Sequence record: LR745206.1
Strand: one strand, 5' to 3'
DNA: 64,000 nt
Shown: positions 6,193 through 62,966 of the stretch, one piece after another
Position numbering within the stretch: the first letter of the stretch is position 1
Layout of the letters: every line of letters starts with the position of its first letter
Notes under the pieces: generated by a model
Told to the model about the DNA's origin: nothing
Seen by the model: the letters and a program-made list of their open reading frames with translations, nothing else
The model's database searches: none
Position numbers and translations under genes: made by a program

Positions 6193-6361
6193 AAAACATA
6201 TTAGTTCATCTTATGGTATTGATGTAGAGGATAAATTAACTTCTATGTTATCAGAAGAATTGGCTAAGGAAATTGATAAGAGTATTCTAAGTGGTCTTGG
6301 TATTGAACCAGATAGATATAAACGTAGAAAGAATTCTATTAATAAGATATTTAAACAATAG
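6182..6361 (+). CDS. small protein with major-capsid-like helix and C-terminal R-x-x-K tag
   Basis: Likely start ATG 6182. YGIDVEDKLTSMLSEELAKEIDKSIL, ends RRKNSINKIFKQ. Confidence 0.6.
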   Translation: MKSKKHISSSYGIDVEDKLTSMLSEELAKEIDKSILSGLGIEPDRYKRRKNSINKIFKQ

Positions 6362-6869
6362 CAAATTCTATTTTAGCAAAAAGATATTCATCAGAGGAAT
6401 ATCCATTATCATTTAAATAAGATTTATAATCCATTTCACCTATCCCGGTGAATTTATATAAAGGAATTCGGTAACTATCAGGGTTTTGAACTTGTTGAGC
6501 TTTTCCATTAAAGTATATGATGAATTTAGAATCAAATCCTTGATCAACTAATCTATCTCTAGTTTCACTCATTCTATCAAGTATATTTTCGAATTCTTGT
6601 TCGATACCTTCTTTTTTAAGACACTTTTTTAGTTGTATTATTGTATAAAATTCTGGACCACTCCCAATATAATATGACCAATCTTCATCTTGGATCAAAT
6701 CAGCAAAATAAGGTTTGAATTCATCTGATATATCTCTATTTCCTTGATATAATCTTTGTCTATTCTTATATTGAGTATAAGATTTTAAACGTCCTAAATT
6801 ATGACTGATATCTTTCAAAGATTTTAATAAATCATCTTCGTCAGATTCAAACATTTTTAAATATTTCAT
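6351..6869 (-). CDS. hypothetical protein with N-terminal capsid-targeting-like (CTS-like) motif
   Basis: True start likely ATG 6869 (MKYLKMFESD), directly after TAATATATA. Confidence 0.7.
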   Translation of the reverse strand: MKYLKMFESDEDDLLKSLKDISHNLGRLKSYTQYKNRQRLYQGNRDISDEFKPYFADLIQDEDWSYYIGSGPEFYTIIQLKKCLKKEGIEQEFENILDRMSETRDRLVDQGFDSKFIIYFNGKAQQVQNPDSYRIPLYKFTGIGEMDYKSYLNDNGYSSDEYLFAKIEFAIV

Positions 6870-6873
6870 AAAG

Positions 6874-6882
6874 TATATATTA
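6874..6882 (-). promoter_or_regulatory. putative phage late promoter TAATATATA
   Basis: Exact motif just upstream of ATG 6869, recurrent across the window. Confidence 0.55.
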
Positions 6883-7479
6883 AATCTTCTGAATAATAAC
6901 CGGTAGAGTACCAAGTTCAAGAACTTTACTTTTATTAAGTAAGAACTCAATGTCGTAGAAGTTGAAGTGGAAAGTCATTGTAAATTCTTTAGCATTTACT
7001 TTTTGTTGAGAATAGTTAAAATCATTATCTGATAAAGATTTCAATACAATTTCGTAAAATTTTATAACATAAATAGCATCTCGATGTATGTCAAGAGCTG
7101 TTATCGTAAATGGATTTAAGAAAGAGTTTTCAACGTCTAAATAATGTTTATTAATTATATCAAACATTAACCAATAATTTAAATCAGAATCAACAGATCT
7201 AAAAGTAACTTGTAATTCACGAGTCGTTATTATATCCTGTATATTAGTAGCTGGTTTAAATTGTCTTTCTTTACCTCTCATAGTAATTTGTTTTGGCATA
7301 TCAAAAGAAATACCAGGGAAGTTAACACTCTTCATAGTTGAGTTTATATAATCTATTACATTCTCATACTGTATCCAATTCTTTTCTAGAATTGGAGTAT
7401 AAGTCTCAAGTATTTCTGATGGTAAGAAATCACCTGGTAGGTTAAATATAAACTGACTGGATTGGCTACTTAATCTCAT
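6880..7479 (-). CDS. putative tail tube/baseplate-type structural protein
   Basis: Beta-rich pattern LQVTFRSVDSDLNYWLMFD...FTMTFHFNFYD, reminiscent of T4 gp19/gp54-fold proteins, in a late operon. Confidence 0.4.
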   Translation of the reverse strand: MRLSSQSSQFIFNLPGDFLPSEILETYTPILEKNWIQYENVIDYINSTMKSVNFPGISFDMPKQITMRGKERQFKPATNIQDIITTRELQVTFRSVDSDLNYWLMFDIINKHYLDVENSFLNPFTITALDIHRDAIYVIKFYEIVLKSLSDNDFNYSQQKVNAKEFTMTFHFNFYDIEFLLNKSKVLELGTLPVIIQKI

Positions 7480-7481
7480 TA

Positions 7482-9906: not shown

Positions 9907-9915
9907 ATCATTTTA

Positions 9916-12129: not shown

Positions 12130-12621
12130 TTATAAGAATTTTTTCACCAACTCTTTATTATACTCCCCGTTTGGATCCGAAACGAGTTCTGATGTTATTA
12201 AATTCTGGTATTGTATATCATTAACTTTATAAAGTTTTATATCCATAATAAATAAAGGTACAAGATCACCAGTTTCTTCATCCACAAAATCCTCCTTACG
12301 TATATCACCAATTGGTCTGAATCCTGTAGCATCATAAAGCCTTTCCAAACATTCATAGAAAGTATCCATATCTTCTATATCCAATACGAAATTACTAAGA
12401 TTAATATATGGTAAACCAATTAGATTATTTGGAGCATGTCCACCCATTGATGTAGTATATCCAAATTCTTTAACACTTAATGTTGTATTGTATTGATAAT
12501 TATCAGTTATATCATAGAAAAATTCAGATATATCCAATTCACTTGGGAATCTTTTTATTTCTGAATCTGTCATATCATTAGATGTTAATTCAAACACTTT
12601 ATATTTCTTTAGATATTTCAA
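12130..12621 (-). CDS. hypothetical protein, CTS-like N-terminus
   Basis: MKYLKKYKVFE. Confidence 0.7.
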   Translation of the reverse strand: MKYLKKYKVFELTSNDMTDSEIKRFPSELDISEFFYDITDNYQYNTTLSVKEFGYTTSMGGHAPNNLIGLPYINLSNFVLDIEDMDTFYECLERLYDATGFRPIGDIRKEDFVDEETGDLVPLFIMDIKLYKVNDIQYQNLITSELVSDPNGEYNKELVKKFL

Positions 12622-13850
12622 AATTTTAATAATATTTTAACTGTATAATCATAGATATCTCTATTGTCATCAAATCTTCTATCCTCTCTACTCATGTCAA
12701 ATATGACATCATCATATTCCAATGTTGGTAATATACTCGGTAGCACTTCATCCAAATCAGATTCTAATTTTTTAAGATTCATAGTTCCTGATGTGTGTGT
12801 ATCTCTATGACCACCTATATCAATCAATACACATGGAACATACATATCTAAAATATTTATAGGACTATATTTTTGTAGTTTTTGTATAGCATATTTATGT
12901 TTAGATAAAACATCACTATTAACAACTTCATAATCCATTATGTTAAAATTAACACATTGATATTTTTTATCTGTTACATATTCTTCGGATTCATCTTGTC
13001 TAATATAAATTTCATCTTTCCAACTACCAAGTTTAAATGTTGGTGCAAGAATATCTCTTATAATTTCATTCATTATCATTAAATACCTTTTCTCATCCGT
13101 TAAATTTGAAACTGGCATTGTGCCATTATATTTTCTTTTATTTGGTTCATCAATTTTTTCATAATCACCATATATTATAGATGTTGTTACCCATTTATCT
13201 TTATCGGTTGGTATATCATCCCAGATTTCATAAAGTCTATCATTAACATAATCAATATCTACCTTTTTCATAGCTTCCCAAGCTTTTGATAAGTGTCTAT
13301 TTATTATATCAAACCAACCATCCCCAATAAAATGATCTACCCAATGCTTTATCTCTGATTGATCAAGTTTATTATCACTATTATAATGTATGTCATTATA
13401 AAAATCATAAATGCTATATTTTTGTTTAATAGATTCATTCAAATCTTTCTCATCTAATAATCTACCATAATCATCTTCTGAGTAAATTAGTAAAGATATA
13501 CCACTTGAACCAAATTCCTCATCACCATAAACATAAATAAATCTATCCAATTCCATCCAATCACCACCACTAATTTCAACATCAATACCATAACCAGCAT
13601 CTTTTCTAAAACAATATTCTTCTATTCTCTCAACAGTTTCTTTTATATCATTATATGTGAAAAACTCAGTTGAAATTTGAACATCCAATGCTTTAATAGA
13701 ATCCGTAAACATAGGTGGTGTATAATTAACTTCTTTAATATTTATATCAAACCCAGAATCAGACAATTCTAGTGTCATATCTCTTACATCCTCAATTAAA
13801 TTTGAAAAAGAGGAAGATTCAAATAATTTATATTTGGTTAAATATTTCAT
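12618..13850 (-). CDS. hypothetical protein, CTS-like N-terminus and internal LNES site
   Basis: MKYLTKYKLFES...DLNESIKQK. Confidence 0.7.
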   Translation of the reverse strand: MKYLTKYKLFESSSFSNLIEDVRDMTLELSDSGFDINIKEVNYTPPMFTDSIKALDVQISTEFFTYNDIKETVERIEEYCFRKDAGYGIDVEISGGDWMELDRFIYVYGDEEFGSSGISLLIYSEDDYGRLLDEKDLNESIKQKYSIYDFYNDIHYNSDNKLDQSEIKHWVDHFIGDGWFDIINRHLSKAWEAMKKVDIDYVNDRLYEIWDDIPTDKDKWVTTSIIYGDYEKIDEPNKRKYNGTMPVSNLTDEKRYLMIMNEIIRDILAPTFKLGSWKDEIYIRQDESEEYVTDKKYQCVNFNIMDYEVVNSDVLSKHKYAIQKLQKYSPINILDMYVPCVLIDIGGHRDTHTSGTMNLKKLESDLDEVLPSILPTLEYDDVIFDMSREDRRFDDNRDIYDYTVKILLKF

Positions 13851-14260
13851 GGTCTTATTAATAATCTTATGATACTATCATCACCATTTTCAAAAAATAT
13901 CTCTGATGGTTTATAAATAGTTTTAAATCTATCAACATCCTCTTTTAATTGATTAACTATATTATAATAACTATCAAAATCTTCCATCTTTGCTTTATCA
14001 TAAAAATCATGGTGAAAAGATAATTCAAAACCCTCAACACAAGTTAGTAATTGTCTTTGATCACATTTTGCACCCAAAAGTTTCATACCACTGAAATCAT
14101 TATGTGCCCAATCCATCTTACTATTAGGATTAAAATAAACAATATCAATAACAGTAGCTGATCCAGATTCACAAAGGTCAAATGTATGGGCAAAGAAGTT
14201 TTGCAAATCATCTTTAGATAACTCTTGATTATTTTCATTAAATCTTCTTAAATGATTCAT
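13847..14260 (-). CDS. hypothetical protein, CTS-like N-terminus
   Basis: MNHLRRFNEN. Confidence 0.7.
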   Translation of the reverse strand: MNHLRRFNENNQELSKDDLQNFFAHTFDLCESGSATVIDIVYFNPNSKMDWAHNDFSGMKLLGAKCDQRQLLTCVEGFELSFHHDFYDKAKMEDFDSYYNIVNQLKEDVDRFKTIYKPSEIFFENGDDSIIRLLIRP

Positions 14261-15573
14261 TTTTTTCTAATAACTTTTATTCTCTCAGTTTGATATTCCA
14301 TTATATCTACCTCTTGGTGTTGTTTCAATAAATCAACCATACCTTGATACATCTGAACTGTTATTCGACAATCAGTAATAGCATCGTGATATCCAGACAT
14401 ATTAATACCAAGAGCAGGTCCTATTTTTGACATTGATGATGATATTAAACCACCATCTCTTGGTGACTTACCGATAGCATCAATCATCTCTTTATATTTA
14501 ACATCACTTTCAGCTAGTTTCTGTAATAATGGTAAAAAATATAATTGTATTAGCATTTTAGTATCAAATACCTCATTTTTAATTTTATGTCCATATCTAC
14601 CAGCTAACATAGCCATATCAAAGGCAGCATTTTGTGCAATTAATAAACAAGGCTCATAATCAGAGATGAATTGAAAAAAGTCATTAATAACTTGTTCTTC
14701 ATCTTTATATTTATAACCACCAGATCCATATCTGTTAAATCCTAGAACCCATTTAGTCCTATCTTCTGGTTCGTTATATTTAGACTTTGTATCTTTTGTT
14801 AGTTTTATTTTCTCATCAAATTTACCAAGTTCGCTAAATTTATTATTATTAAAATCACACTCAGTTACTAAACATGAAACTTGTGTTAGTTGTTCATTCC
14901 TAGGACCATTTAATCCAGTAGTTTCTGTATCTAACCAAACCCAAGGCATATCAGTTTTAGAATCTAACCAAGATAGTATTTCTGGTATAGTTTTATACCA
15001 CATCTTATTTTCATTTATCGATTCTGATATCTTATTAATATCAAATTTATATTCTTTACCAATAGCATCAGAATATGTTATTTTATTTATGTTTTTAACT
15101 GTATATTTATAGTCTGGTTTAATATATTTCTTACCAGTGCCCTTTTTAACATAAGCAATTGTTAAGTGTGGTTTATAATCAGGATATTCATTTGAATTTG
15201 GTAACTCAGATAATTTATCAAACAAATATTGTAATGATCCCTTTGGTTCTACATTGAACTTAACAACATCAAATTTAGAATTCTCAAATATATCAACACC
15301 ATTAACCTCAATATCTATATCACCATCAAAGGAGTCGAATACAGACTTAACTTCTTCTATTGATACTTCCTTATGTAAACCATATAATAATGTAAGGTGT
15401 GGTCTCTTTTGTATACCATAAGTCGAATCACCATCTTCCTCATAGATATCTTCTGGATCAATCCAAGATGTAATTTCTTCCCAGTTTGAAACTGGGACAT
15501 CAATCATAACACAACCATATTTGTGTCCGTTTATAGATTCTTTTATAAATTGCTTGTATTTCTTTAATTTCAT
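14257..15573 (-). CDS. Acb1/gp57B-like 2H phosphodiesterase fused to DEDDh (DnaQ-like) exonuclease, CTS-like N-terminus
   Basis: MKLKKYKQFIKES. Two HxT motifs (RPHLTLLYG, KPHLTIAY), then LDTETTG, QNAAFD, HDAITD. Confidence 0.85.
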   Translation of the reverse strand: MKLKKYKQFIKESINGHKYGCVMIDVPVSNWEEITSWIDPEDIYEEDGDSTYGIQKRPHLTLLYGLHKEVSIEEVKSVFDSFDGDIDIEVNGVDIFENSKFDVVKFNVEPKGSLQYLFDKLSELPNSNEYPDYKPHLTIAYVKKGTGKKYIKPDYKYTVKNINKITYSDAIGKEYKFDINKISESINENKMWYKTIPEILSWLDSKTDMPWVWLDTETTGLNGPRNEQLTQVSCLVTECDFNNNKFSELGKFDEKIKLTKDTKSKYNEPEDRTKWVLGFNRYGSGGYKYKDEEQVINDFFQFISDYEPCLLIAQNAAFDMAMLAGRYGHKIKNEVFDTKMLIQLYFLPLLQKLAESDVKYKEMIDAIGKSPRDGGLISSSMSKIGPALGINMSGYHDAITDCRITVQMYQGMVDLLKQHQEVDIMEYQTERIKVIRKK

Positions 15574-15596
15574 ACTCTATATATTTTATTTCTATG

Positions 15597-16899: not shown

Positions 16900-17175
16900 T
16901 TAGTTTAAGTTATAATTAATCATTCTTATATCTTCATCATCGTCATAATCTTCTTCATCATCGTCTCCATCAAAATCAAATCCCATATTTACTAAATAGG
17001 ACATAACTTCATCAGTTAACTCAAGATTTCCATCCCTCTCCTCCATAAAATTATCAAACATACTTGTTGTGAAGAATCCTTTTTCATCTTTGATTTTTTG
17101 TAATTTAGGTAATAAATCTTTAGCTATTTCCTCAGCCAATTTACCATACGATTCAAATGTTTTTAAATACTTCAT
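16900..17175 (-). CDS. acidic hypothetical protein, CTS-like N-terminus
   Basis: MKYLKTFES. Confidence 0.7.
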   Translation of the reverse strand: MKYLKTFESYGKLAEEIAKDLLPKLQKIKDEKGFFTTSMFDNFMEERDGNLELTDEVMSYLVNMGFDFDGDDDEEDYDDDEDIRMINYNLN

Positions 17176-17396
17176 TATCTTATTCCTTCATTTTTTAATG
17201 CCGCATTATGTGCATTGGAACCAATATAAGTTTCAACTCTCATTACATTAGGTTCACCCTCTTCAACATCCCAGGCTTCTTCTTCGGTCATAAACCATCT
17301 ATCACCAACATATCCATCACCAGCATCATATGCTCTACAATAGACAACGACTTTATCTGATTCATTACTCTCATTAAATTTATTTAAGTGTTTCAT
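17175..17396 (-). CDS. hypothetical protein, CTS-like N-terminus
   Basis: MKHLNKFNES. Paralog of the C-terminal half of 17399..17902. Confidence 0.7.
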   Translation of the reverse strand: MKHLNKFNESNESDKVVVYCRAYDAGDGYVGDRWFMTEEEAWDVEEGEPNVMRVETYIGSNAHNAALKNEGIR

Positions 17397-17398: not shown

Positions 17399-17902
17399 TT
17401 ATTTACTATTTCTTCTTGCTTTTCTATGTATATCTGATCCAATGAATGTCTCTACACTACCATTACAATGTTCACCCCATCCTTCATCTTGATTATCTTC
17501 CGCGGCTTCGGCTTCTTCATCTGTTAAATACCATTCTAAACTAACAGAACCATCACCATTATTCATACAAGCGTAATAAACAACAATCTTTTCAAGTGTG
17601 TTACCTGGTTTACTTACAATATTTGATGTATCTGATTCACTTCTGACATCATCCGCTATTATTTTCAAAAATCCATCTACATCACTAACTCTACCTGAGT
17701 TTATTACCATATCAAGATCTTCGATTGTCATATCAATATCATCATAAAGTTCACCTAATTCGGATAGAATATCAACACTAGCAGGTTCATCACCTTGCTC
17801 ATATTCAGATTCGTCATAATTTATAATAGAGTTGGATCTTGTTATAAAATCATTAACCTTATTATGGTTTACTGATTCATTAAATTTCTTTAAGTGTTTC
17901 AT
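17399..17902 (-). CDS. acidic hypothetical protein, CTS-like N-terminus
   Basis: MKHLKKFNES. Confidence 0.7.
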   Translation of the reverse strand: MKHLKKFNESVNHNKVNDFITRSNSIINYDESEYEQGDEPASVDILSELGELYDDIDMTIEDLDMVINSGRVSDVDGFLKIIADDVRSESDTSNIVSKPGNTLEKIVVYYACMNNGDGSVSLEWYLTDEEAEAAEDNQDEGWGEHCNGSVETFIGSDIHRKARRNSK

Positions 17903-18537
17903 TATTTCTTCTTCTTATTTTCACCACTAAAAGGACTTAGTAAATGTTTTAAATTCCAAGATGGAACAAACTTCTTATTATGTTTCTCAAAATCTTCATA
18001 TGATTCAATTCCTGTATCAATTGGATTTTGAGCATATTGTATATTAGCTCCTTGTTTAGATAAATCAGATATTCTATCACCAATATCAGTACCTTTAGTA
18101 AGTTTTCTTAATTTTTTAAGTTGATCAACTGTTTGTTGTCTAGGCAGTGATTCATTAATATTATCTTCTGAACCCCAAGTTTCGGTACCATCACCATTAT
18201 CAGTCTTTTTAAGTTTAAATCTTTTCTTCAAGTCATTCATTTGATCAAGAGCAGCATCCATATCTTCTGGTGATAAATTTGATAACATACTTCTTAATTC
18301 TTCCTCTGTATATGTATTCATCAAATCAACAGCATTTTTCAATTGTAATAGTTCTTGATACTCATCATTTTTAAGTATATTTTCTCCACACTCCGGGCAA
18401 GAAGCATCAACATGATTTGGATAATCTTCGAATGGTATAGACATATCATTCCAATCACAACTAGGATTATCACATTTCAATCCATGTATATCTAAACTAG
18501 CATCATCATTTTCATTAAATTTCTTTAAGTGATTCAT
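17902..18537 (-). CDS. zinc-ribbon protein, CTS-like N-terminus, internal INES site
   Basis: MNHLKKFNEN, CDNPSC...CPEC, DNINESLP. Confidence 0.7.
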   Translation of the reverse strand: MNHLKKFNENDDASLDIHGLKCDNPSCDWNDMSIPFEDYPNHVDASCPECGENILKNDEYQELLQLKNAVDLMNTYTEEELRSMLSNLSPEDMDAALDQMNDLKKRFKLKKTDNGDGTETWGSEDNINESLPRQQTVDQLKKLRKLTKGTDIGDRISDLSKQGANIQYAQNPIDTGIESYEDFEKHNKKFVPSWNLKHLLSPFSGENKKKK

Positions 18538-18809
18538 ATTTCATCCATAAATAATTTATCTAGGTAATCCCAAGTCTCTTGGTAACCACCATGTAATCCC
18601 CACTTATCTTCTAAGTAAGATGTTATATCATCAGCTTTATCCTCAACACCTAATTCATCATTATTAGCAACTTCTAAGAATTTGTTCTTTAAGTCTTCAT
18701 GTCCATCATAAAGATCAAAGTCTTTATCACTTAACCATTGATTAAATTTAACCCAATGTGATTGATATCCATCTCTATCAAACTCTTCAAATATTTTAAT
18801 ATGCTTCAT
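18534..18809 (-). CDS. hypothetical protein, CTS-like N-terminus
   Basis: MKHIKIFEE. Confidence 0.7.
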   Translation of the reverse strand: MKHIKIFEEFDRDGYQSHWVKFNQWLSDKDFDLYDGHEDLKNKFLEVANNDELGVEDKADDITSYLEDKWGLHGGYQETWDYLDKLFMDEI

Positions 18810-18832: not shown

Positions 18833-18841
18833 TATATATTA
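18833..18841 (-). promoter_or_regulatory. putative late promoter TAATATATA
   Basis: Exact motif heading the five-gene CTS operon. Confidence 0.55.
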
Positions 18842-21491: not shown

Positions 21492-21892
21492 GTTATATAA
21501 GCACATATAAGATATTAAAATCATTAAAACCAATCGAATTATACGATATAATTACAGGAGGATATTGTTCTGAATATAGAGAGGAGTTTAAAAGAGAGGT
21601 TATTTCTTTGAAAGGTGAATGGTATCTAAATAATTGGCATAATAATAAAATAGAATTGGATATATTATGTGCTTATATATCTGATACAGGATTTACACTA
21701 TATACCACAAAAGAAGAGGCTAAAAGAATTGAAGAGGAATTTAAAAGTTGGAATTTATTTACTGAGGTTTGGTCAAAATGGTATGGTGGTAAAACTTATG
21801 TAGTTGGATTTAATTACTCATATGAGGCATTTAGTAAATTATATTTAGAATATAAAAGAGATAAGAAAATTAATCAATTGGTTAATTTATAA
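21488..21892 (+). CDS. hypothetical protein with C-terminal tag
   Basis: Ends YKRDKKINQLVNL. Confidence 0.65.
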   Translation: MSYISTYKILKSLKPIELYDIITGGYCSEYREEFKREVISLKGEWYLNNWHNNKIELDILCAYISDTGFTLYTTKEEAKRIEEEFKSWNLFTEVWSKWYGGKTYVVGFNYSYEAFSKLYLEYKRDKKINQLVNL

Positions 21893-26211: not shown

Positions 26212-26220
26212 TATATATTA
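26212..26220 (-). promoter_or_regulatory. putative late promoter TAATATATA
   Basis: Exact motif upstream of the neck gene. Confidence 0.6.
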
Positions 26221-36470: not shown

Positions 36471-36479
36471 TAATATATA
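36471..36479 (+). promoter_or_regulatory. putative late promoter TAATATATA
   Basis: Exact motif 5 nt before the Rnl1 ATG. Confidence 0.55.
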
Positions 36480-37770: not shown

Positions 37771-37783
37771 TATATATACTATA

Positions 37784-42828: not shown

Positions 42829-42837
42829 TATATATTA
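42829..42837 (-). promoter_or_regulatory. putative late promoter TAATATATA
   Basis: Exact motif upstream of 41547..42803. Confidence 0.55.
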
Positions 42838-45973: not shown

Positions 45974-45982
45974 TATATATTA
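45974..45982 (-). promoter_or_regulatory. putative late promoter TAATATATA
   Basis: Exact motif 4 nt before the ATG. Confidence 0.55.
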
Positions 45983-46111: not shown

Positions 46112-48034
46112 ATGAATCTATTAAACACCATTAAAAAAGATTTTACTCAATCTGAAAAGGATATTTCGATACAAGACTACTTAAAATTATGTAAAGAAGA
46201 TAAAAAAATATATGCAACACCGGCTGAACGTGTTTTAGACGTTATTGGTGAAGCAGAGATGGTTGATACAAAATCGGATGAAAGATTAAGTAGAATATAC
46301 TCTAATCGAATAATTAAAAGATATAAAACCTTCTCAGATTTCTATGGAATGGAAGATACAATCGAACAAATCGTATCCTTTTTCAGACATGCATCACAAG
46401 GACTCGAAGAAAAGAAACAAATTCTTTATCTATTGGGACCAGTAGGTGGTGGTAAATCATCATTAGCCGAAAGACTTAAACAATTAATAGAGAAAAGTCA
46501 TATTTATGTCCTTGTTGCTGATGGTGTGGTGTCACCAGTTTGGGAAAACCCATTAGGATTATTTTCAAATTATAGATCTGAATTGGAAGATGAATATGGT
46601 ATCTTAAAAAGATACATACCATCTTGTCCTTCACCTTGGGCTACTAAGAGATTAGCAGAGTTTGGTGGTGATATTTCCAAATTCACAGTAAGAAGAATTA
46701 AAATGTCTATTCAATCACAAATTGGTATCTCTAAAACAGAGCCAGGTGATGAGAATAACCAAGATATATCAGCACTTGTTGGTAAAATTGATATACGTAA
46801 ATTAGCTGAGTATCCACAAAATGATGCTGATGCTTATAACTACTCAGGAGCACTTTGTAGAGCAAATCAAGGACTTATGGAGTTTGTTGAGATGTTCAAA
46901 GCCCCGATTAAAATGTTAAATCCACTTTTAACTGCGACACAAGAAGGTAACTATAATGGTACTGAAAATTTACCAGCTATTCCTTTCCAAGGTATAATTT
47001 TGGCTCACTCAAATGAAAGCGAGTGGGAATCATTTTCTAATGATAGAAAGAATGAAGCTTTCTTAGATAGGGTTTATATTGTAAGAGTTCCTTATTGTCT
47101 TAGAATAGATGAGGAGGTTCAAATTTACGAAAAATTATTACAAAGTTCTTCATTATCCGAATCACCTTGTGCACCACAAACATTGGACTTATTAGCTCAA
47201 TTTTGTATAATGACAAGAATGAAAGATCCAGAAAATTCAATACTATATTCTAAAATGAGAATTTATAATGGTGAGAATTTGAAAGAATCTGACCCAAAAG
47301 CTAAATCTCTACAAGAGTATAAAGATAATGCTGGTATAACAGAAGGGATGGATGGTGTATCAACAAGATTCGCATTTAAAGTTCTTTCTAAGGTTTTTAA
47401 TCACGATACAGAAGAAGTTGCTGCTAATCCAGTTCATTTATTTTATGTTTTAGAACAAGAAATAATAAAAGCTCAATTACCTAGAGATGTTGAAGAATAT
47501 TATCTAAATATTCTAAAATCAACAATAACTACTAGATATGCTGATTTTATCGGAGATGAAATACAAAAAGCTTATGTTGATTCATATCAAGAATATGGTC
47601 AAAATCTATTTGAGAGATATATTACTTATGCTGACCATTGGTGTCAAGATAATGATTATCGTGATCCAGAAACAGGTCAACAGTTTGATAGACAAGCACT
47701 TAATGAAGAGCTTGAGAAAATTGAGAAACCAGCTGGTATTGCAAATCCTAAAGATTTCAGAAATGATGTTGTTCAATTTTATTTAAGACATAAAGCTAAA
47801 AATAGTAAAGCACCATCTTGGGATTCTTATGAGAAAATTAAAAATGTTATAGAAAAAAGAATATTCTCTAAAACAGAAGATCTTATTCCTGTTATATCAT
47901 TCACTAGTAAAGCGTCTAAGGATGATGAACATAAACATTCAGAATTTGTTAGTAGAATGAAGAAAAGAGGATATACTAATAAACAAATTCAATTATTAAC
48001 TGATTGGTATCTAAGAGTTAGAAAATCCAGTTAA
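46112..48034 (+). CDS. prkA: PrkA/YeaG family AAA+ serine kinase/ATPase
   Basis: GPVGGGKS, KTEPGDENNQDIS, ANQGLMEFVEMFKAPIK, AHSNESEW, GMDGVSTRF. Confidence 0.95.
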   Translation: MNLLNTIKKDFTQSEKDISIQDYLKLCKEDKKIYATPAERVLDVIGEAEMVDTKSDERLSRIYSNRIIKRYKTFSDFYGMEDTIEQIVSFFRHASQGLEEKKQILYLLGPVGGGKSSLAERLKQLIEKSHIYVLVADGVVSPVWENPLGLFSNYRSELEDEYGILKRYIPSCPSPWATKRLAEFGGDISKFTVRRIKMSIQSQIGISKTEPGDENNQDISALVGKIDIRKLAEYPQNDADAYNYSGALCRANQGLMEFVEMFKAPIKMLNPLLTATQEGNYNGTENLPAIPFQGIILAHSNESEWESFSNDRKNEAFLDRVYIVRVPYCLRIDEEVQIYEKLLQSSSLSESPCAPQTLDLLAQFCIMTRMKDPENSILYSKMRIYNGENLKESDPKAKSLQEYKDNAGITEGMDGVSTRFAFKVLSKVFNHDTEEVAANPVHLFYVLEQEIIKAQLPRDVEEYYLNILKSTITTRYADFIGDEIQKAYVDSYQEYGQNLFERYITYADHWCQDNDYRDPETGQQFDRQALNEELEKIEKPAGIANPKDFRNDVVQFYLRHKAKNSKAPSWDSYEKIKNVIEKRIFSKTEDLIPVISFTSKASKDDEHKHSEFVSRMKKRGYTNKQIQLLTDWYLRVRKSS

Positions 48035-48156: not shown

Positions 48157-49419
48157 ATGTCAATAAATATAGTAGATAGAAGAAAGAATACTAAAGGGAA
48201 ATCCTCTGAGAATCGTCAGAGGTTCCTTAAACGCGTTGAAGGTCAAATTAAAAAGGCATTACCGGATATTATAAAGGGTACTAATATTAAAGATATTACA
48301 TCATCTAAAGATAAAGTTAAGGTTCCAATAAAAGGAATAAAAGAACCACAATTTACATATGATAAAGATAGTGGTGATAAGAAAAATGTACATCCTGGTA
48401 ATAAGGAATTTACGGAAGGTGATAAAATAAAAAAGCCAGATGATGGTAAAGGTAAGGGAGGTCGAAAAGGATCTAATGATCCAGCTACATCCGAAGATGA
48501 TTTTACTATATCAATAAGTAGAGAAGAATTTCTTGATTATTTTTTCCAAGATTTGGAATTACCAGATATGGTAAAAAAACATTTAGACTCAATAGTTGAT
48601 TTCAAACAAAAGAGAGCAGGTTATTCAAACCAAGGAACTCCAAATAGATTAAATGTTGTTAGATCTTATAAAAACTCTATGGCTCGTAGAATGGCTACAG
48701 GTATATTCTTCGATAAAAGAATTAAAGAGATAGAAGAAAGTCTTAAAGATGATAAACTATCAGATGTTGATAGAATAATACTTGAAAAAGAATTAGATAA
48801 GTTCAAAAAAATGAAGCTATCTGTTTCTTTTATGGAAGAGGTTGATTTACAATATAATAATTTTGATAAAGTAGCTATACCAACTACATCAGCGGTAATG
48901 TTTTGTATAATGGATATTTCTGGATCAATGGGTGAAAAAGAAAAAGATATATCTAAAAGATTCTTTATGTTATTATATATGTTTTTAACCAAACAATATG
49001 AAAGAATTGAGATAGTTTTTATAAAACATCACACTCAAGCCAGTGAGGTTTCTGAGGAAGATTTTTTTAATTCAAAGGAATCAGGTGGGACAGTTGTTGC
49101 ACCAGCTCTTGAGTTAATGAGAGAAATAATTAAAGAAAGATATTCAAAAAGTTGGAATATTTATGCAGCTCAGGCATCCGATGGTGATGTTTGGAATAAA
49201 TCAGATGCTGATGATTGTTATAATCTATTAAATGGTGAGATATTAAATGATATTCAATATATGGTTTATATTGAAGTTTGTAGAGAAAATGATGGTGATT
49301 TGTGGAATAATTATAGATCTTTATCAGAGAGTAGAAAGAATTTTGAGGTTGGAAAAATATCAGATGTTAGTCAAATATGGCAAGTGTTTCAAGACTTCTT
49401 TAAAAAGAAATCAATATAA
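48157..49419 (+). CDS. yeaH: YeaH/YhbH family vWA-domain protein
   Basis: IVDRR...NRQRF, PGNKEF, LELPDM, CIMDISGSM, SGGTVVAPAL, QASDGD. Confidence 0.93.
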   Translation: MSINIVDRRKNTKGKSSENRQRFLKRVEGQIKKALPDIIKGTNIKDITSSKDKVKVPIKGIKEPQFTYDKDSGDKKNVHPGNKEFTEGDKIKKPDDGKGKGGRKGSNDPATSEDDFTISISREEFLDYFFQDLELPDMVKKHLDSIVDFKQKRAGYSNQGTPNRLNVVRSYKNSMARRMATGIFFDKRIKEIEESLKDDKLSDVDRIILEKELDKFKKMKLSVSFMEEVDLQYNNFDKVAIPTTSAVMFCIMDISGSMGEKEKDISKRFFMLLYMFLTKQYERIEIVFIKHHTQASEVSEEDFFNSKESGGTVVAPALELMREIIKERYSKSWNIYAAQASDGDVWNKSDADDCYNLLNGEILNDIQYMVYIEVCRENDGDLWNNYRSLSESRKNFEVGKISDVSQIWQVFQDFFKKKSI

Positions 49420-49420
49420 T

Positions 49421-50920
49421 ATGAATAAAGAAGAATTAAAGAAAATATTCAGTAAATCAGATTGGGATAACGATACGATAATTCAAGCTAATGATATTGT
49501 ATCAAGAATAGCTTCTGAATATCTTGGACTTGATACATATCCAAATCAATTTGAAATTATATCATCAGAACAGATGTTAGATGCTTATTCATTGATTGGA
49601 TTACCATTATCTTACAACCATTGGAAATTTGGAAAAGATTTCGTTATAAACGAGAATCGATATAAAAAGGGTAGAATGGGTTTAGCATATGAGTTGGTAA
49701 TTAATTCAAATCCTTGTATATCATACAATATGGAAGATAACACAACCTGTTTGATGTTATTAGTATTGGCACATGCTGCTTATGGACATAATCACTTTTT
49801 CAAAAATAATTATCTATTTAAACAATGGACTCAAGCTGACTCTATAATAGATTATATGTTATTTGCTAAGAAATTTATTGCTGAGTGTGAAGAAAAATAT
49901 GGATATGAAGAGGTTGAAATGGTTTTAGATTCTTGTCATGCATTAATGAATTATGGGGTTGATAAGTATAAAAAACCAAGAAAACTATCACCTATTGAGG
50001 AACATAGTAGATTGAAGAAGAAGATTGAGGATGATAGAATTCTTTTAAATGATATTTGGAGAACAATTCCTGATAAGAAAGATAAAAGGTCTAAAAGAAC
50101 TAGATTCCCATCTCAACCAGAGGAGAATATACTTTATTTTATAGAGAAGAATTCACCTAAATTAAAAGAATGGCAACGTGAAATTGTTAGAATAGTTAGA
50201 AAGATATCTCAATATTTTTACCCACAAGGACAAAGTAAAGTTATTAATGAAGGTTGTGCTACATTCTCACATTTTGAAATAATAAACAAGATGTATGATG
50301 AGGGATATTTGGATGGTGGCTTTATGTTGGAGTTTATGCACCACCATTCTAATGTTGTTAATCAACCAGGATTTGATTCTAAATATTATTCGGGATTAAA
50401 CCCATACACATTGGGATTTAATATATTCAAAGATTTGAAGAGAATGTCATTAGAACCAACAAAAGAAGATTTAGCATGGTTTCCTAATATAGCAGGAAAA
50501 GGCAATTGGCAAGAAACATTTAGATATATTGTTGAGAACTTCAAAGATGAAACCTTTGTTTTACAATATCTTTCACCTAAAGTGATGAGGGATATGAAAT
50601 TATTTGAAATAAGTGATGAGGAAGGAAGTAAACATTATGAAGTAACTTCTATACATAATGATAGAGGTTATAAAAAAGTTAGACAATCACTTTCAGAATC
50701 ATATAATAGAAGCAGATATGTTCCGGATATACAAGTTTATAAAGTAGATGTTTTTGGTACAAGATCATTAACACTTGAATATACACCAATAAACAATAGA
50801 GATTTGGATTTAAGTGATATTGATAATGTTTTACCACATGTTAAATATTTATGGGGATTTCCTGTAAGAATGGTAAGTCGTGAAGATGGTAAGCTTGTTA
50901 ATATATCATCAATAGATTAA
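49421..50920 (+). CDS. spoVR: SpoVR/YcgB family protein
   Basis: Start ATG 49421. GLDTYPNQFE, YNHWKFGK, LAYELVIN, AHAAYGHNHFF, NEGCAT, NPYTLG. Confidence 0.93.
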   Translation: MNKEELKKIFSKSDWDNDTIIQANDIVSRIASEYLGLDTYPNQFEIISSEQMLDAYSLIGLPLSYNHWKFGKDFVINENRYKKGRMGLAYELVINSNPCISYNMEDNTTCLMLLVLAHAAYGHNHFFKNNYLFKQWTQADSIIDYMLFAKKFIAECEEKYGYEEVEMVLDSCHALMNYGVDKYKKPRKLSPIEEHSRLKKKIEDDRILLNDIWRTIPDKKDKRSKRTRFPSQPEENILYFIEKNSPKLKEWQREIVRIVRKISQYFYPQGQSKVINEGCATFSHFEIINKMYDEGYLDGGFMLEFMHHHSNVVNQPGFDSKYYSGLNPYTLGFNIFKDLKRMSLEPTKEDLAWFPNIAGKGNWQETFRYIVENFKDETFVLQYLSPKVMRDMKLFEISDEEGSKHYEVTSIHNDRGYKKVRQSLSESYNRSRYVPDIQVYKVDVFGTRSLTLEYTPINNRDLDLSDIDNVLPHVKYLWGFPVRMVSREDGKLVNISSID

Positions 50921-57264: not shown

Positions 57265-57508
57265 AAGAGTTTAACAATTCTGATATCTTTCTATCTCTGT
57301 CTATACCCCTTAACACACCTACTATATTTGATTCATATCCAGAATAAATTGGGTGAAGATAATCTTCCTCATCAACATAAGATAATTGCCAATGATTTGG
57401 ATAATTTGGCTTTTCCCACAATATATGTTTACCATTGAAAGTTGGTTTAGACCACTCATCAAACTCTTCGCAATAAATAAAACCATATTTCTCAGGAAAT
57501 TCACTCAT
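57263..57508 (-). CDS. small protein with C-terminal tag
   Basis: Ends DRDRKISELLNS. Confidence 0.6.
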   Translation of the reverse strand: MSEFPEKYGFIYCEEFDEWSKPTFNGKHILWEKPNYPNHWQLSYVDEEDYLHPIYSGYESNIVGVLRGIDRDRKISELLNS

Positions 57509-58349
57509 CTTCTTTCACAAAGGATATTTGATATGATGTTGGGTTGTTAATGAACTCGAATTTACTTGGTTTATATTCCGCTCTATCATCATAAATATTC
57601 TTTATTTTATATCCACTTTCTTCCATATAGTTTAATATATCAGCGATATTAGAATCCAATAATTCTCTATTTTTAGCAAAATTACCATAAAAATCTTCAC
57701 GTTTGTTATTTTTAATATCTAAGAATAATTGTGGTTTGGATGCTGCTCCAGCAAATGTGTATGGTGTGTAGTTAACAGTTGTGTAGTAACCAATATCATT
57801 TATTTCCGATAGCTTATCTTCAATAAACTCAATATCTTTATTCATATCATATATAACATCACCATACTCCCAAACAAGGGTATCAATGACCTCTTTACTT
57901 GTGTTTGATATACCCTCAAATGTATAATATGTTGTGTTAGAAGTTGACCAAGTCATCTCAATACTTGATACACTAGGCCATCTCTCATCAATCCAAGCAA
58001 TATCTTCATCTCTCATCCTATCATCAGGTCTTATATAAAATTTCTTCTGAATGCTTGACTTGTTATATTTTAATTTAGAATACCAACCTAACTCTCTCAT
58101 ATATTGATATATTCTCAATAAAGATTCTGAGATATCTTCTGTGAAATTAAAATACCCACCTTCTCTCTTTTGTATCTTGATATTAATACTAGTTACTGGT
58201 TCAGTAATAGGAGAATATGAAATGGTTATAAAGAACCCAATATCTTCTAAATCAGTTGATATATCTTTTAATGTGTAAATAATATCACTATCTATATGAC
58301 TTGGAAATTCTGATTTCTCAAATATTTTATATGATTTTAGGTATTTCAT
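57501..58349 (-). CDS. hypothetical protein with internal duplication, CTS-like N-terminus
   Basis: MKYLKSYKIFE, two copies of [DS][LE][EI]xDIG[FY]. Confidence 0.7.
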   Translation of the reverse strand: MKYLKSYKIFEKSEFPSHIDSDIIYTLKDISTDLEDIGFFITISYSPITEPVTSINIKIQKREGGYFNFTEDISESLLRIYQYMRELGWYSKLKYNKSSIQKKFYIRPDDRMRDEDIAWIDERWPSVSSIEMTWSTSNTTYYTFEGISNTSKEVIDTLVWEYGDVIYDMNKDIEFIEDKLSEINDIGYYTTVNYTPYTFAGAASKPQLFLDIKNNKREDFYGNFAKNRELLDSNIADILNYMEESGYKIKNIYDDRAEYKPSKFEFINNPTSYQISFVKEDE

Positions 58350-59014
58350 TATTTCATTAATGGTATTTGTGGAGTAACCTCAAATCTCTCATTAATGTAC
58401 ATTTTCAATTCATTCTCTACATAATGATCTGGAACTTCCATCTCTGGATCCATAGTGCTCATTCTTTCTGATAAATCTATTGAGAATTCATGTAGAACAT
58501 TAGGTCTTATAGCCTCAACTAATCTATCAGAAACAACAAATGCTCTAGTAAATCTATCTTTTGTTGTGATTTCACCTTCTGCTAGTTTCATAGAACTATC
58601 TATTACCTTTTTTAGAAACCCATTATAATCATTACCTGGATCTTCAAGTATAGGCTTCATAATTTTATTAAATGCTCTAGTGGATCCAAGTATAAAACCA
58701 GCAATTGCTATTATTGGAAAAAACGGAGCAAGTGCCATTGGTGTCACTCTATGTAACATCTTAACAATACCAACTTTCAATCCACTTCTTTTCTTAGCAA
58801 CTTGAGCATCTTTGAATAAAGCATTTAACATACCAAATGTAAACGTCCTACCCTTCTCACTTAAATATTTACCTAAGTTTCCTCTGTGAGCATGATATAG
58901 ATACTTATTGATTTGCTTCTTGTCAGTAACACCCAATCTCTTTAATTCAGCTTTAATATTCTTATCATATTTCTCCTGTATTAAAAACTCATCATATTTC
59001 TTTATAGTATTCAT
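58349..59014 (-). CDS. hypothetical protein, CTS-like N-terminus and hydrophobic segment
   Basis: Start ATG 59014, MNTIKKYDEFLIQE, ALAPFFPIIAIAGFILGS. Confidence 0.65.
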   Translation of the reverse strand: MNTIKKYDEFLIQEKYDKNIKAELKRLGVTDKKQINKYLYHAHRGNLGKYLSEKGRTFTFGMLNALFKDAQVAKKRSGLKVGIVKMLHRVTPMALAPFFPIIAIAGFILGSTRAFNKIMKPILEDPGNDYNGFLKKVIDSSMKLAEGEITTKDRFTRAFVVSDRLVEAIRPNVLHEFSIDLSERMSTMDPEMEVPDHYVENELKMYINERFEVTPQIPLMK

Positions 59015-59018: not shown

Positions 59019-59046
59019 AAACAAAATATACTTTTTACTATATATA
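59019..59046 (+). promoter_or_regulatory. putative middle promoter AAACAA-N16-TATATA
   Basis: Upstream of the gp52-like gene. Confidence 0.5.
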
Positions 59047-60395: not shown

Positions 60396-60420
60396 ACTTC
60401 ATTAATTTGTAATTAATTGT

Positions 60421-60428: not shown

Positions 60429-60432
60429 TAAA

Positions 60433-61569
60433 ATGAAAGAAGAATTGCTAAAGCTTATTGAGGAAAAATCACCAGGAGCAAGACCACTATATCTTGTTAT
60501 ACGTGGTTCACATGCTTATGGAACTAATATAGAAACATCTGATACTGATTATGCTGGTGTTTTTATACAATCAATAGAAGATATTTTTGGTCTAAACTAT
60601 AAAGAACAGATAAATGATGATACTAACGATACCGTTATTTATGAACTTCGTAGATTTCTAGGATTACTCGCTAGCAATAACCCAACTGTATTAGAATTAC
60701 TTAATACTCCAGAAGATTGTATTATCTACAAAGATCCTATTTTTGATTTGATTTTAAAGAATAGAGATATATTTATTACCAAAGTTTGTGATAATTCATT
60801 TGGTGGATATGCACGACAACAAATTGGTAAAGCAAAGGGTCAAAATAAAAAACAAAACTGGGAGCAGTCCAAAGTAATACGTAAAACTCCATTGGATTTT
60901 TGCTATCTATTACAAAATGAAAAATCTATACCATTAGTTGATTATCTAGATAAACATAAGATGGATCAAAGATTCTGTGGATTATCAAATGTGCCACATA
61001 GTAGAGATACTTATGCTTTATTTTATGATTATAACTTATCAAAGTTACCATTCCCACATTTAGTAGGTAAGGTAAATCAAGGATTTAGAGGAATTGTATT
61101 TGAAGATTCAAATGAGGTTAGGCTAAGTTCTATACCATTTAACTGCCCTGTTGAATATTTCATTGGTCATATCTCTTATAATAAAGATGGATATTCACAA
61201 CATTGTAAAGATTATAATTCTTATCAAACTTGGATAAATGAAAGAAATGAGGCTAGATGGGTTGATGTTAAATCACATGGTCAAAAAATAGATGGTAAGA
61301 ATATGATGCACTGTGTTAGATTAATTGGAATGGCTCGTGAGATTGGTGAAGGTAAGGGTATTTTAGTAAGAAGAGATAACGCAAAAGAACTTATTTCGAT
61401 TAGAAGAGGTGAAGTTGACTTACAAACATTAATTGATAATGTTGAATCTGATATTCGAGAAATTGATCAAATTTTCAAAAATTCCAATCTACCAGATAAA
61501 GTTGATGAAAATTTTGTACATGAATTATTGGTTAAAGTTAGAAAAGAAGTTTATAAATTAAATAGATAG
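60433..61569 (+). CDS. Pol-beta superfamily nucleotidyltransferase (RlaP/NrdC.11-like)
   Basis: RGSHAYGTNIETSDTDYAGVF (GS...DxD), NNPTVLELL, KNMMHCVRL. Confidence 0.8.
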   Translation: MKEELLKLIEEKSPGARPLYLVIRGSHAYGTNIETSDTDYAGVFIQSIEDIFGLNYKEQINDDTNDTVIYELRRFLGLLASNNPTVLELLNTPEDCIIYKDPIFDLILKNRDIFITKVCDNSFGGYARQQIGKAKGQNKKQNWEQSKVIRKTPLDFCYLLQNEKSIPLVDYLDKHKMDQRFCGLSNVPHSRDTYALFYDYNLSKLPFPHLVGKVNQGFRGIVFEDSNEVRLSSIPFNCPVEYFIGHISYNKDGYSQHCKDYNSYQTWINERNEARWVDVKSHGQKIDGKNMMHCVRLIGMAREIGEGKGILVRRDNAKELISIRRGEVDLQTLIDNVESDIREIDQIFKNSNLPDKVDENFVHELLVKVRKEVYKLNR

Positions 61570-61573
61570 TATT

Positions 61574-62191
61574 ATGGGTATTTTGGAGATTATGATTATA
61601 TTTTTTATGGGTATTTTGATTGGTGGTTTTACAACAAAACTATTATCAAAATATTCTGATAAATTACAAAGGGAGAAATTAATTGATAACATAAATTCAC
61701 AATACAAACAGATTCTTAGAAGTGTTTCTAAAGGTGAGGCTAAATTTAAGAATAGGGTAAATAATACTGTATTCATTTCATCTAATCTAAAAGAACATGG
61801 TGATGTTGATGTTATTTACATGATGGATAATAAAGATATAGCCATATTTAAAAATAATAAATGTATTTATACATCTGAATCAGTTAACAGTGAAGTTGTA
61901 AAGGATATAACAGTAACTATTGATAATAGATATCAAAATCAAATAAATGATGTTGTTGATATTCTTGGATTCAAATTTTATAGAGAAGAGTTTGAAAAGT
62001 CATTCAAAGGTGAAATAAAATCTCTTGATATGACTAAATTGGATTTATCAGATATTGATAAAATTAAAAATGAAAATGACTCCAAGTTCACGATAAATGA
62101 TGTATTGGATAAGATAAGTAAAAGTGGGATGGATAGTCTTACATTTGAAGAAAGAATATTTCTTGATGAATATAGTAAAAACAATGGATAG
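61574..62191 (+). CDS. membrane-anchored protein with DUF6576-like C-terminal motif
   Basis: N-terminal hydrophobic helix, C-terminal INDVLDKISKSGMDSLTFEERIFL. Confidence 0.55.
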   Translation: MGILEIMIIFFMGILIGGFTTKLLSKYSDKLQREKLIDNINSQYKQILRSVSKGEAKFKNRVNNTVFISSNLKEHGDVDVIYMMDNKDIAIFKNNKCIYTSESVNSEVVKDITVTIDNRYQNQINDVVDILGFKFYREEFEKSFKGEIKSLDMTKLDLSDIDKIKNENDSKFTINDVLDKISKSGMDSLTFEERIFLDEYSKNNG

Positions 62192-62534
62192 GATAGTAAA
62201 TCTAACTCCATTCTCTATACTTTCTCAAGTAAATGAAATAGAACATCACACTTTATTAGAGATTACCACTATCGTAATAGAAAATAGTGGTAATTTTTTT
62301 TACATAAAAGATGAAGTTGAAAAGATATTAGATGTCTCTAATATGCCTCAGTATATTAAAGAAGATTGGATTAATTATAACAAAAAAGAATTAAATATTG
62401 CTTTATTGAATCACCAGATAAAGAATCTCGAAAATATTCTTGAATATAAAAGACCATATGATGAAAAGGATGAAGAAGCTCTTATTTTATTGAAATCTTT
62501 GAGAAGGGATTTAATTATCAACGGGCTTATCTAA
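62184..62534 (+). CDS. hypothetical protein with C-terminal tag variant
   Basis: Start ATG 62184, ends LRRDLIINGLI. Confidence 0.6.
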   Translation: MDRIVNLTPFSILSQVNEIEHHTLLEITTIVIENSGNFFYIKDEVEKILDVSNMPQYIKEDWINYNKKELNIALLNHQIKNLENILEYKRPYDEKDEEALILLKSLRRDLIINGLI

Positions 62535-62966
62535 ACTAAAAACAATATCAATAAATAAAATAAAACTAGTATTGATTTTATTTTCCTTAGTGTATTCTCT
62601 TAGTGTATCAACATCACTAAACCATTGTCCACCAGTAACCCTAACAAATAGTGAGTTTAATTTACAAACACATCTGCTTTCGAAGTGTTCAATAGAACTT
62701 TGTAAATCATCAAAAAAATCATCAGTGAAGTTGAAATTTTTATTACTTAATCTAACACAAAGACCCTTGAATGATTTTTTATTATTGAAATCATTTGGAT
62801 TGTCTATAATTTTTTTACCATCCATTGGTGAAAAATTACCAACAAAACAATCATTTACTGATAATCCGTGATCTGCTACGGGAAGAAATATATCACGTAC
62901 CTCATCAAATGAGATGCTTTTTTCAAAGTTCTCAATAAAGTTCTCAAACAATTTAACATACTTCAT
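62511..62966 (-). CDS. hypothetical protein, CTS-like N-terminus
   Basis: Start ATG 62966, MKYVKLFENF. Confidence 0.7.
   Translation of the reverse strand: MKYVKLFENFIENFEKSISFDEVRDIFLPVADHGLSVNDCFVGNFSPMDGKKIIDNPNDFNNKKSFKGLCVRLSNKNFNFTDDFFDDLQSSIEHFESRCVCKLNSLFVRVTGGQWFSDVDTLREYTKENKINTSFILFIDIVFSLDKPVDN

Follow-up and report, generated by a model that had tools for sequence, protein, structure and literature searches.

We examined a stretch of 64,000 nucleotides (nt) from sequence record LR745206.1, referred to throughout as the window, in which 27 open reading frames (ORFs) begin with a short conserved peptide that we call the leader. The window matched LR745206.1 with 100% identity, its base 1 being base 434,001 of the record, the 634,780-bp genome of an uncultured phage with a G+C content of about 28%. 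This genome is among the four largest complete phage genomes of Al-Shayeb et al. 2020, falls into the "Mahaphage" clade and has the Bacteroidetes as its predicted host (PMC7162821). The leader is a modular, transferable N-terminal peptide on otherwise unrelated proteins, and it is under peptide-level selection. With somewhat better than even confidence, we propose that it may be a propeptide similar to the capsid-targeting sequence (CTS) that phage T4 uses, and that this megaphage has spread it over 100-160 of its genes. Coordinates below are those of the window except where another record is named, and genes and motifs lie on the minus strand unless marked (+).

Leader genes and their transcription units

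The leader spans Met1 to a Glu at position 8-13 in all 27 window genes and in the 101 genes found genome-wide, and it occurs in three forms. In the S form, residue 4 is hydrophobic, residue 7 is aromatic (Phe or Tyr) and the Glu is residue 8 or 9; the L form contains [FY]-K-[LIV]-F-E, whose final Glu is residue 11; and the T form contains K-[YF]-x-[EQ]-[FY]-I-x-E, whose final Glu is residue 12. The initial annotation had named these same 27 ORFs, all of which were recovered where it had placed them. For six of them, the first possible start has to be passed over in favor of an internal ATG (6351-6869, 21887-22327, 22842-23492, 23489-23941, 38157-38678 and 62511-62966).

All 27 genes lie within 11 tightly packed units, each with a promoter-like motif at its head. 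The motif is of the type TAATATATA, the most enriched 9-mer upstream of genes (142 genes, 24-fold), and the match to TAATATATA is exact in 8 of 12 cases. The first unit is the single S-form gene 6351-6869 (172 residues, MKYLKMFES), with a motif at 6874-6881, 4 nt upstream of the ATG. A motif at 15578-15585, likewise 4 nt upstream of the ATG, heads a unit of four genes. The first of these, 14257-15573 (438 residues, T form, MKLKKYKQFIKE), encodes a 2H phosphoesterase together with a DEDD 3'-5' exonuclease, and it is followed by 13847-14260 (137 residues, S form, MNHLRRFNE), 12618-13850 (410 residues, L form, MKYLTKYKLFE), which is without a family match, and 12130-12621 (163 residues, L form, (M)KYLKKYKVFE), whose TTG start overlaps the stop of the gene upstream. 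This overlap, at 12618-12621, reads TTGA where its neighbors have ATGA, which suggests that translational coupling tolerates the change from ATG to TTG. The third unit consists of five S-form genes, with a motif at 18833-18840, 23 nt upstream of the ATG of the first, 18534-18809 (91 residues, MKHIKIFEE). The second gene, 17902-18537 (211 residues, MNHLKKFNE), encodes a Cys-rich segment and then a basic C-terminal module directly past an internal I-N-E-S, and the remaining three are 17399-17902 (167 residues, MKHLKKFNE), 17175-17396 (73 residues, MKHLNKFNE) and 16900-17175 (91 residues, MKYLKTFES).

The fourth unit is headed by a leaderless gene for a neck protein similar to gp13 of T4 (25411-26190), which has a motif 21 nt upstream, at 26212-26219. 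Six leader genes, from 24339 down to 21887, come after the neck gene, separated from it by 10 nt. These are 24339-25400 (353 residues, L form, MNHLIEFKVFE) and five S-form genes: 23944-24342 (132 residues, MKHLKRYNE), 23489-23941 (150 residues, MNYLRKYNE), 22842-23492 (216 residues, MKYLRKYNE), 22324-22842 (172 residues, MKYLKRFDE) and, as the sixth and last of the run, 21887-22327 (146 residues, MKYLKKYNE), a paralogue of 23944-24342. In the fifth unit, a motif at 34897-34904 lies upstream of an HD-domain gene, which precedes and overlaps by 4 nt the atypical leader-like gene 32947-34290 (447 residues, MKYLKSIYEF), whose product has an HExxH motif. Two units are on the opposite strand. One has a motif at 36472-36479 (+), 5 nt upstream of the ATG of a gene for a T4 RnlA-type RNA ligase, 36485-37747 (+; 420 residues, T form, MKLFKYIEFINE). 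The other has a motif at 37771-37778 (+), 5 nt upstream of the ATG of 37784-38146 (+; 120 residues, L form, MKYLDTYRLFE), after which come 38157-38678 (+; 173 residues, S form, MRLIKKFEN) and 38675-39343 (+; 222 residues, L form, MKHLKSYQLFE).

Of the four units that remain, two hold a single leader gene and two hold a pair. Gene 41547-42803 (418 residues, T form, MILLKYNEYITE), which represents the core family, has its motif at 42829-42836, 25 nt upstream of the ATG, and gene 62511-62966 (151 residues, S form, MKYVKLFEN) has a motif at 62971-62978, 4 nt upstream. The first pair, 45412-45969 (185 residues, T form, MKIRKYIEFITE) and 44711-45412 (233 residues, S form, MKHLKSFNE), is preceded by a motif at 45974-45981, 4 nt from the ATG of the former. 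The second, 58349-59014 (221 residues, S-like, MNTIKKYDE) and 57501-58349 (282 residues, L form, MKYLKSYKIFE), is preceded by one at 59039-59046, 24 nt from the ATG of 58349-59014.

Across the genome, 54 of the 101 leader genes have the TAATATATA-type motif upstream, whereas among the 840 remaining genes only 159 do (Fisher p=6e-13). It also precedes the portal, protease, terminase and neck genes, as well as many ORFs of more than 1,000 residues. In about 84 genes the motif ends 4-6 nt before the ATG, a spacing that implies nearly leaderless mRNAs, and a second class has it 17-29 nt upstream. Our analysis points to a possible late-type promoter, for which the T4 late promoter is the model. A second enriched upstream motif, exemplified by TATATTTGTA, fits the Bacteroidetes promoter type TAnnTTTG. 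It probably marks an early class of genes served by the host polymerase, and it supports the predicted host phylum. This motif is, if anything, rarer upstream of leader genes (7 of 101 vs. 106 of 840, p=0.1).

Frequency, conservation and modularity of the leader

The remainder of the LR745206.1 genome was read as separate 50-kb pieces, each analyzed by itself. Under a strict rule, the leader was present at 101 of about 941 gene starts (11%). The same rule was matched at 2 of 2,730 internal Met residues and by about one gene in shuffled or composition-matched N-termini, and these controls rule out the leader as a mere product of AT-rich composition. A looser rule gave 182 genes where about 24 were expected; therefore, the true number of tagged genes is probably near 160. 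Within the window, a degenerate DNA pattern for the S form had 12 matches, compared with 0.76 expected from shuffles. Leader genes were present in every 50-kb bin of the genome, with the window as the richest stretch (20 of the 80 genes in its bin). The initial annotation had listed them at 6351-62966 and spoken of dozens of proteins; the strict-rule genes lie genome-wide, and the estimate was too low for a set of 100-160.

The composition of the S form was determined from 322 S-type leaders pooled from LR745206.1 and related contigs. Position 2 is K (87%) or R (10%), position 3 is Y (49%) or H (37%), position 4 is L (75%) or I (21%), position 5 is K (88%), position 7 is F (73%) or Y (27%), position 8 is N (57%) or E (35%) and position 9 is E (71%); the shares at positions 2, 4 and 7 are partly circular, since the search rule constrained those positions.

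Behind the leader, the proteins have little in common. When the first 14 residues were removed, only 4 similar pairs were left among the 27 window proteins (BLASTP), and the Pfam families matched by leader proteins are mutually unrelated. In the RnlA-type ligase, residue 25 aligns with residue 8 of T4 RNA ligase 1 (Rnl1), so the leader and a short linker (about 17 residues) are an addition. These results rule out a single paralogous family as the source of the leader genes. The peptide itself is well conserved. Among homologues of the ligase with 69-86% identity, 117 of 120 keep the motif and 113 have the Glu at position 12-13. Met1, Tyr6 and Glu12 are invariant in 42 aligned orthologues of 41547-42803, with F/Y9 and I/L10 near-invariant, and orthologues in the sister genome LR756502.1 preserve the leader pattern despite substitutions. 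Leader codons vary synonymously, at frequencies near those of the gene bodies (modest differences were seen only for Tyr, p=0.005, and for Phe and Leu, p=0.02), and the sequences upstream of leader genes differ from one another. Both observations rule out a nucleotide element, such as a recombination box or a promoter within the ORF. The leader is absent from gp32, the topoisomerase subunits, the clamp loader, the portal, the capsid protein and the sheath.

Proteins that carry the leader

Scanning of 103 leader proteins against Pfam and PHROGs gave Pfam matches for six: the RnlA-type ligase, the 2H phosphoesterase with DEDD exonuclease, a NUDIX hydrolase, an M15 peptidase and two DUF6576 proteins. 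The other 97 had no family match in Pfam or PHROGs, none of the 103 matched an internal-protein family in either, and PADLOC found nothing meaningful among the leader proteins. Hence, they are not homologues of the T-even internal proteins, and the likeness lies in the tag only. The leader proteins are soluble, membrane-like segments being present in 1 of 101 compared with 99 of 840 others, and they are unusually acidic, with a median isoelectric point (pI) of 4.8 vs. 5.8 for the others and 86% of them below pI 6.

The initial annotation had also suggested a role for these proteins in counter-defense. A hint of this is found in two of the 27 window proteins, namely the RnlA-type ligase, whose T4 relative mends tRNA cleaved by host anticodon nucleases, and 14257-15573, whose match to Acb1 (23.1 bits) is below the 27-bit cut-off. 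The same two proteins are the leader-bearing members of an RNA-repair toolkit in the window (36485-37747 (+) and 14257-15573), which further comprises a leaderless second RNA ligase (PF09414, 31129-31773 (+)) and an RlaP-family nucleotidyltransferase (60433-61569 (+)).

Two families were followed through their homologues, and those sourced from NCBI are named 'hypothetical protein' or are nameless. The 41547-42803 family has 1,189 database homologues, with 8 copies in LR745206.1 and 14-15 in other Mahaphages, and only some copies bear the leader. A related domain is found in 72-kb Cellulophaga phages, where the phi38:1 homologue is an unannotated hypothetical protein that lacks the leader. The structure predicted for 41547-42803 had a mean predicted local distance difference test score (pLDDT) of 63.8, with the first 83 residues at low confidence, and a fold search of the PDB with this model gave no match at E<=0.001. 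Members of the 17902-18537 family share a basic C-terminal module of about 85 residues that ends in a Lys run; the N-terminal part attached to it is of at least four different kinds. The module is 70-90% identical across most of the best 120 of 410 homologues, and N-E-S precedes it in 105 of 119, regardless of the N-terminal part. One homologue has a complete internal KKFEDFIKES at the module junction. The predicted structure of 17902-18537 (pLDDT 51.9) was too poor for a fold search.

Head genes and leader-like sites

The genome encodes a portal of T4 type (Portal_T4, 2.7e-57) and a capsid protein of the gp23 family (Gp23, 1.8e-26, plus matches to gp23 in the PDB). Large ORFs that were first taken as the head module proved to be baseplate and helicase genes, and the module was located by way of homologues in the Tenacibaculum phage PTm1. 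Directly upstream of the capsid gene, at 198546-200669 of LR745206.1, is the gene for a 707-residue protein whose first 265 or so residues match head maturation proteases (phrog_207, 4e-30; Pfam Peptidase_S77, 0.005, below cut-off). By tblastn, this one protein covers what other large phages encode in two separate, neighboring genes, annotated as 'prohead core protein protease' and 'scaffolding protein'; a sequence search with the protease against the PDB gave no match. C-terminal of the protease domain are about 11 near-perfect 14-residue repeats, each with Y-S-E-Y and [LI]-A-E-N, and then a very acidic stretch. The protein is thus predicted to be a gp21-type protease fused to a repeat-rich, scaffold-like region. 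The gp13-like neck protein of the window has homologues in Tenacibaculum phages and in Sphingomonas phage PAU.

Both the capsid protein and the protease contain sites that resemble the end of the leader. Residues 35-45 of the capsid protein read ...E[FY]HSINEN, and the Gp23 profile starts later, at residue 86. The HSINEN segment is kept in relatives with capsid proteins about 71% identical, and in LR756500.1, whose protease is about 34% identical, the corresponding segment reads ...HELYEN, followed by the same A-Y. In the protease, [LIVFYM]NES occurs 3 times where 0.09 would be expected, and all relatives read have a hydrophobic-N-E-[SA] site C-terminal of the protease domain. One protease site reads LNES here and VFEN in relatives, so that one position has an S-type ending in the former and an L-type ending in the latter. 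The leader-type hydrophobic-x-Glu sites at the end of the capsid propeptide and behind the protease domain are likely processing points, and their presence in these two proteins suggests that this protease may accept hydrophobic-N-E. Site positions are conserved in LR756500.1, a sample too small to call any co-variation of leader flavor with the protease and scaffold.

Distribution among related phages

IMG/VR viral contigs were searched with the strict leader DNA pattern, which yields a lower bound. The pattern was found on more than 120 stretches of contigs ranging from 4 to 508 kb, and the median G+C of the fetched stretches was 0.29. The 1.04 Mb fetched contained 307 leader ORFs. Among the matches listed, 87 loci had two or more leader ORFs, 111 of 120 loci had homologues of LR745206.1 proteins, and at two loci a leader ORF lay inside a compact head module. 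Other Mahaphage genomes also use the leader. In LR756500.1 (462 kb), the stretch 299442-340170 has a leader flavor of its own, with starts such as MKYILEYEEFLLE on several adjacent genes, and leaders from one genome seem to resemble each other more closely than they do those of other genomes. We found no paper that ties capsid-targeting sequences to huge phages, and a massively expanded leader set appears to be unreported.

Other genes of the window

Seven sugar-modification genes lie in a run at 152-6192 (+), among them a GT11 fucosyltransferase-like gene and a methyltransferase gene (Pfam matches). NAD-dependent epimerase/dehydratase-like N-termini in this run were judged by eye only, and none of the seven bears the leader. 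The phage also carries a trio of genes for PrkA kinase (46112-48034 (+)), DUF444 (YeaH-like, 48157-49419 (+)) and SpoVR (49247-50920 (+)), a conserved bacterial set linked to stress and sporulation; this stretch is 78.6% identical in DNA sequence to LR756502.1. A tRNA scan of the window found none.

Interpretation of the leader

In T4, the CTS is an N-terminal propeptide of 10-20 residues that can bring foreign proteins into the head (PMC9026906, PMC5694885). Its bearers are IPI, IPII and IPIII, Alt and gp24 (Mullaney and Black 1996, reviewed in PMC9026906, PMC5694885). Residues 4 and 7 of IPIII serve targeting, and residues 8 and 10 serve processing (PMC9026906). The gp21 protease cleaves after Glu in the motif I/L-x-Glu, as in ITE-6 of Alt and LIE-9 of gp21 (PMC5694885, PMC9026906). 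In the S and L forms of the leader, positions 4 (L/I/V) and 7 (F/Y) are fixed as hydrophobic, both having been required by the search rule, and the T and L forms, which end in I/L/M-x-E and [LIV]-F-E, respectively, fit the gp21 motif. A match to a T-even internal protein is seen in the T-type leader of 45412-45969 (MKIRKYIEFITED), which has Y-x-E-F-I-T-E in common with Ip4 of phage RB27 (KM607000.1). Ip4 starts with MKTYQEFITEA and IpI of the same phage with MKTFKEFTST. An Ip4-type core lies within the first 15 residues in 15 genes of LR745206.1, compared with 0.8 expected.

From these sequence features we infer docking, cleavage, packaging and ejection of the leader proteins, along with the function of the cargo, in the following way. 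Leader genes would be transcribed together with virion genes. The amphipathic leader of 9-12 residues, which is hydrophobic at about positions 3/4 and 7 (6 and 9/10 in the longer variant), would dock each new protein on the prohead core, and this core would be the repeat-rich scaffold fused to the gp21-type protease. The capsid shell would close round the core, and the protease would then cleave after the final Glu of the leader (hydrophobic-x-Glu), which would release soluble, mostly acidic cargo inside the head. At the next infection, the cargo would exit with the DNA.

A broader proposal, which we make tentatively and rate at somewhat less than an even chance, is that the leader acts as a general loading tag that puts more than 100 soluble proteins, up to a sixth of the genes, into the capsids of the largest known phages. 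Since the tag is found on more than 120 related viral contigs, the prediction is not bound to one genome. If it is correct, the loaded set would include enzymes that repair RNA and degrade nucleotide signals, the virion would arrive with its starter proteome ready-made, and this payload would be what the very large capsid and a good part of the 'dark' gene content serve. Huge phages are rich in genes of unknown function, and the leader would offer a handle on them: for 11-17% of the genes, it would tell where the products are and when they act, since they would be present in the cell as soon as infection begins. The T4 principle of capsid targeting would then have grown from a few proteins to delivery on the scale of a proteome, and a sequence rule could predict virion cargo from metagenomes and supply candidates for new anti-defense and host-takeover proteins.

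Several observations weigh against capsid targeting. The S form, which is the commonest, ends in [FY]-x-E or F-E and is thus non-canonical for gp21, as the second residue ahead of the Glu is Phe or Tyr and not Ile or Leu; an S-form profile scored Ip4 and IpI of RB27 at the 70th-86th percentile, which does not raise them above ordinary N-termini. T-even internal proteins are described as basic (PMC9026906), in contrast to the acidic cargo found here, and the RNA ligase, NUDIX and exonuclease enzymes are not known as T4 head proteins. With 100-160 members, or 11-17% of genes, the tagged set is far above any precedent, the reviewed examples being the few CTS proteins of T4 and the 19 processed proteins of 201phi2-1 (PMC9026906). 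No leader ORF was present in a 41-kb sample of Lak-B1 or in the initial 50 kb of PTm1, a cultured relative. Genes for topoisomerase, DnaJ and Dam methylase are also preceded by the TAATATATA-type motif, and because these non-structural genes carry it, the label 'late' goes no further than our inference. Finally, the phage is uncultured, and its leader proteins are known here from sequence alone.

The leader might instead direct these proteins to some other partner than the capsid, or mark them for handling by it; the phage's own Hsp70 system would be the obvious choice, and another would be a proteolytic adaptor, for which the leader would be a degron that sets protein lifetime. We think this unlikely, despite the full Hsp70 set that lies amid the leader genes: DnaK at 39636-41510 (+; HSP70, 3.4e-250), a full-length DnaJ at 26828-27910 and GrpE at 28777-29475. 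A short basic-hydrophobic peptide would suit such a partner, the low-confidence first 83 residues of the modeled 41547-42803 would fit a flexible, accessible end, and the tagged set may exceed plausible capsid cargo. A non-capsid partner leaves unexplained the invariant terminal Glu, the match to the T-even internal-protein leader, the sites at the capsid propeptide end and behind the protease domain, and the co-transcription with the neck gene.

We give little credence to a role in expression, in which the conserved start would help ribosomes to initiate on near-leaderless mRNAs or tightly coupled genes in a host without Shine-Dalgarno pairing. Shine-Dalgarno sequences are indeed not evident upstream of leader genes, and in 38 of 101 just 4-9 nt separate the motif from the ATG, so that their mRNAs may be nearly leaderless. 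However, the same 4-9 nt spacing is shared by 72 genes without a strict leader, including those for signal-peptide and structural proteins, and half of the leader genes are operon-internal. Synonymous codons in the leader track genome usage while the amino-acid replacements are conservative, and the pattern is nearly absent at internal Met residues yet occurs inside fused proteins right before a conserved module.

Import into an intracellular phage compartment, such as the nucleus-like shell of some jumbo phages, is in our judgment highly improbable. Very large phages can organize the infected cell, and soluble enzymes and small acidic proteins make up many of the tagged set; yet gp32, the topoisomerase II subunits, the clamp loader and the helicase, which would be the expected residents of a replication compartment, lack the leader, and nucleus-forming phages are not known to use such a linear tag. 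That the leader is a relic of common descent, left by one multiplied and diverged ancestral gene without any shared present function, is scarcely credible and largely refuted: four true paralogue pairs and the eight genomic copies of the 41547-42803 family speak for it, but the leader sits on the unrelated folds of the RnlA ligase, 2H/DEDD exonuclease, NUDIX and M15 peptidase proteins, is additional to what T4 Rnl1 has, persists in orthologues that are 60-86% identical, and could be kept for 10 residues while the rest diverges beyond recognition only under selection on the leader itself.

Comparison with known systems

The capsid-targeting propeptide that we favor for the leader has its nearest counterpart in the T4 CTS, to which the initial annotation had likened it. 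The two agree in their place at the extreme N-terminus, their length and their occurrence on unrelated mature proteins, and this phage has homologues of gp20, gp21 and gp23. Hydrophobic residues at about positions 4 and 7 and a terminal hydrophobic-x-Glu may be further points in common. This likeness, strengthened by the match of the T form to Ip4, is qualified by the S form, which shares the 4/7 hydrophobic spacing and the final Glu with T-even leaders but is unlike them in profile score, and by the acidic cargo. Unlike the T4 CTS, the leader has three length forms, with Glu at 8-9, 11 or 12, and it is borne by 100-160 genes rather than by a handful of proteins. Encapsulins offer another parallel, in that a short terminal cargo-loading peptide sends unrelated enzymes into a shell of the HK97 fold. 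However, the encapsulin tag is usually C-terminal and no protease cuts it off, and its shell, a nanocompartment of the cell, has no injection step.

The arrangement of the leader genes recalls the polymorphic internal-protein loci of T-even phages, where a conserved leader likewise stands on tandem, fast-changing, unrelated cargo genes and where a link to host defense systems has been proposed (PMC9026906). Those phages have one small locus, whereas here the clusters are scattered through a genome of 635 kb and also occur on more than 120 metagenomic contigs related to it. The ejection or inner-body proteins of the giant phages phiKZ, 201phi2-1 and SPN3US likewise belong to a large and diverse load of head proteins, which in SPN3US numbers about 50 (PMC5694885, PMC7411985). 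In phiKZ-like phages, a gp21-related protease cuts after Glu, and the propeptides are thought to target the prohead (PMC5694885, PMC7411985). These propeptides are mostly longer than 100 residues, have no common short N-terminal sequence and are cleaved at A/S/G-x-E, whereas the leader described here is a uniform peptide of 9-12 residues.

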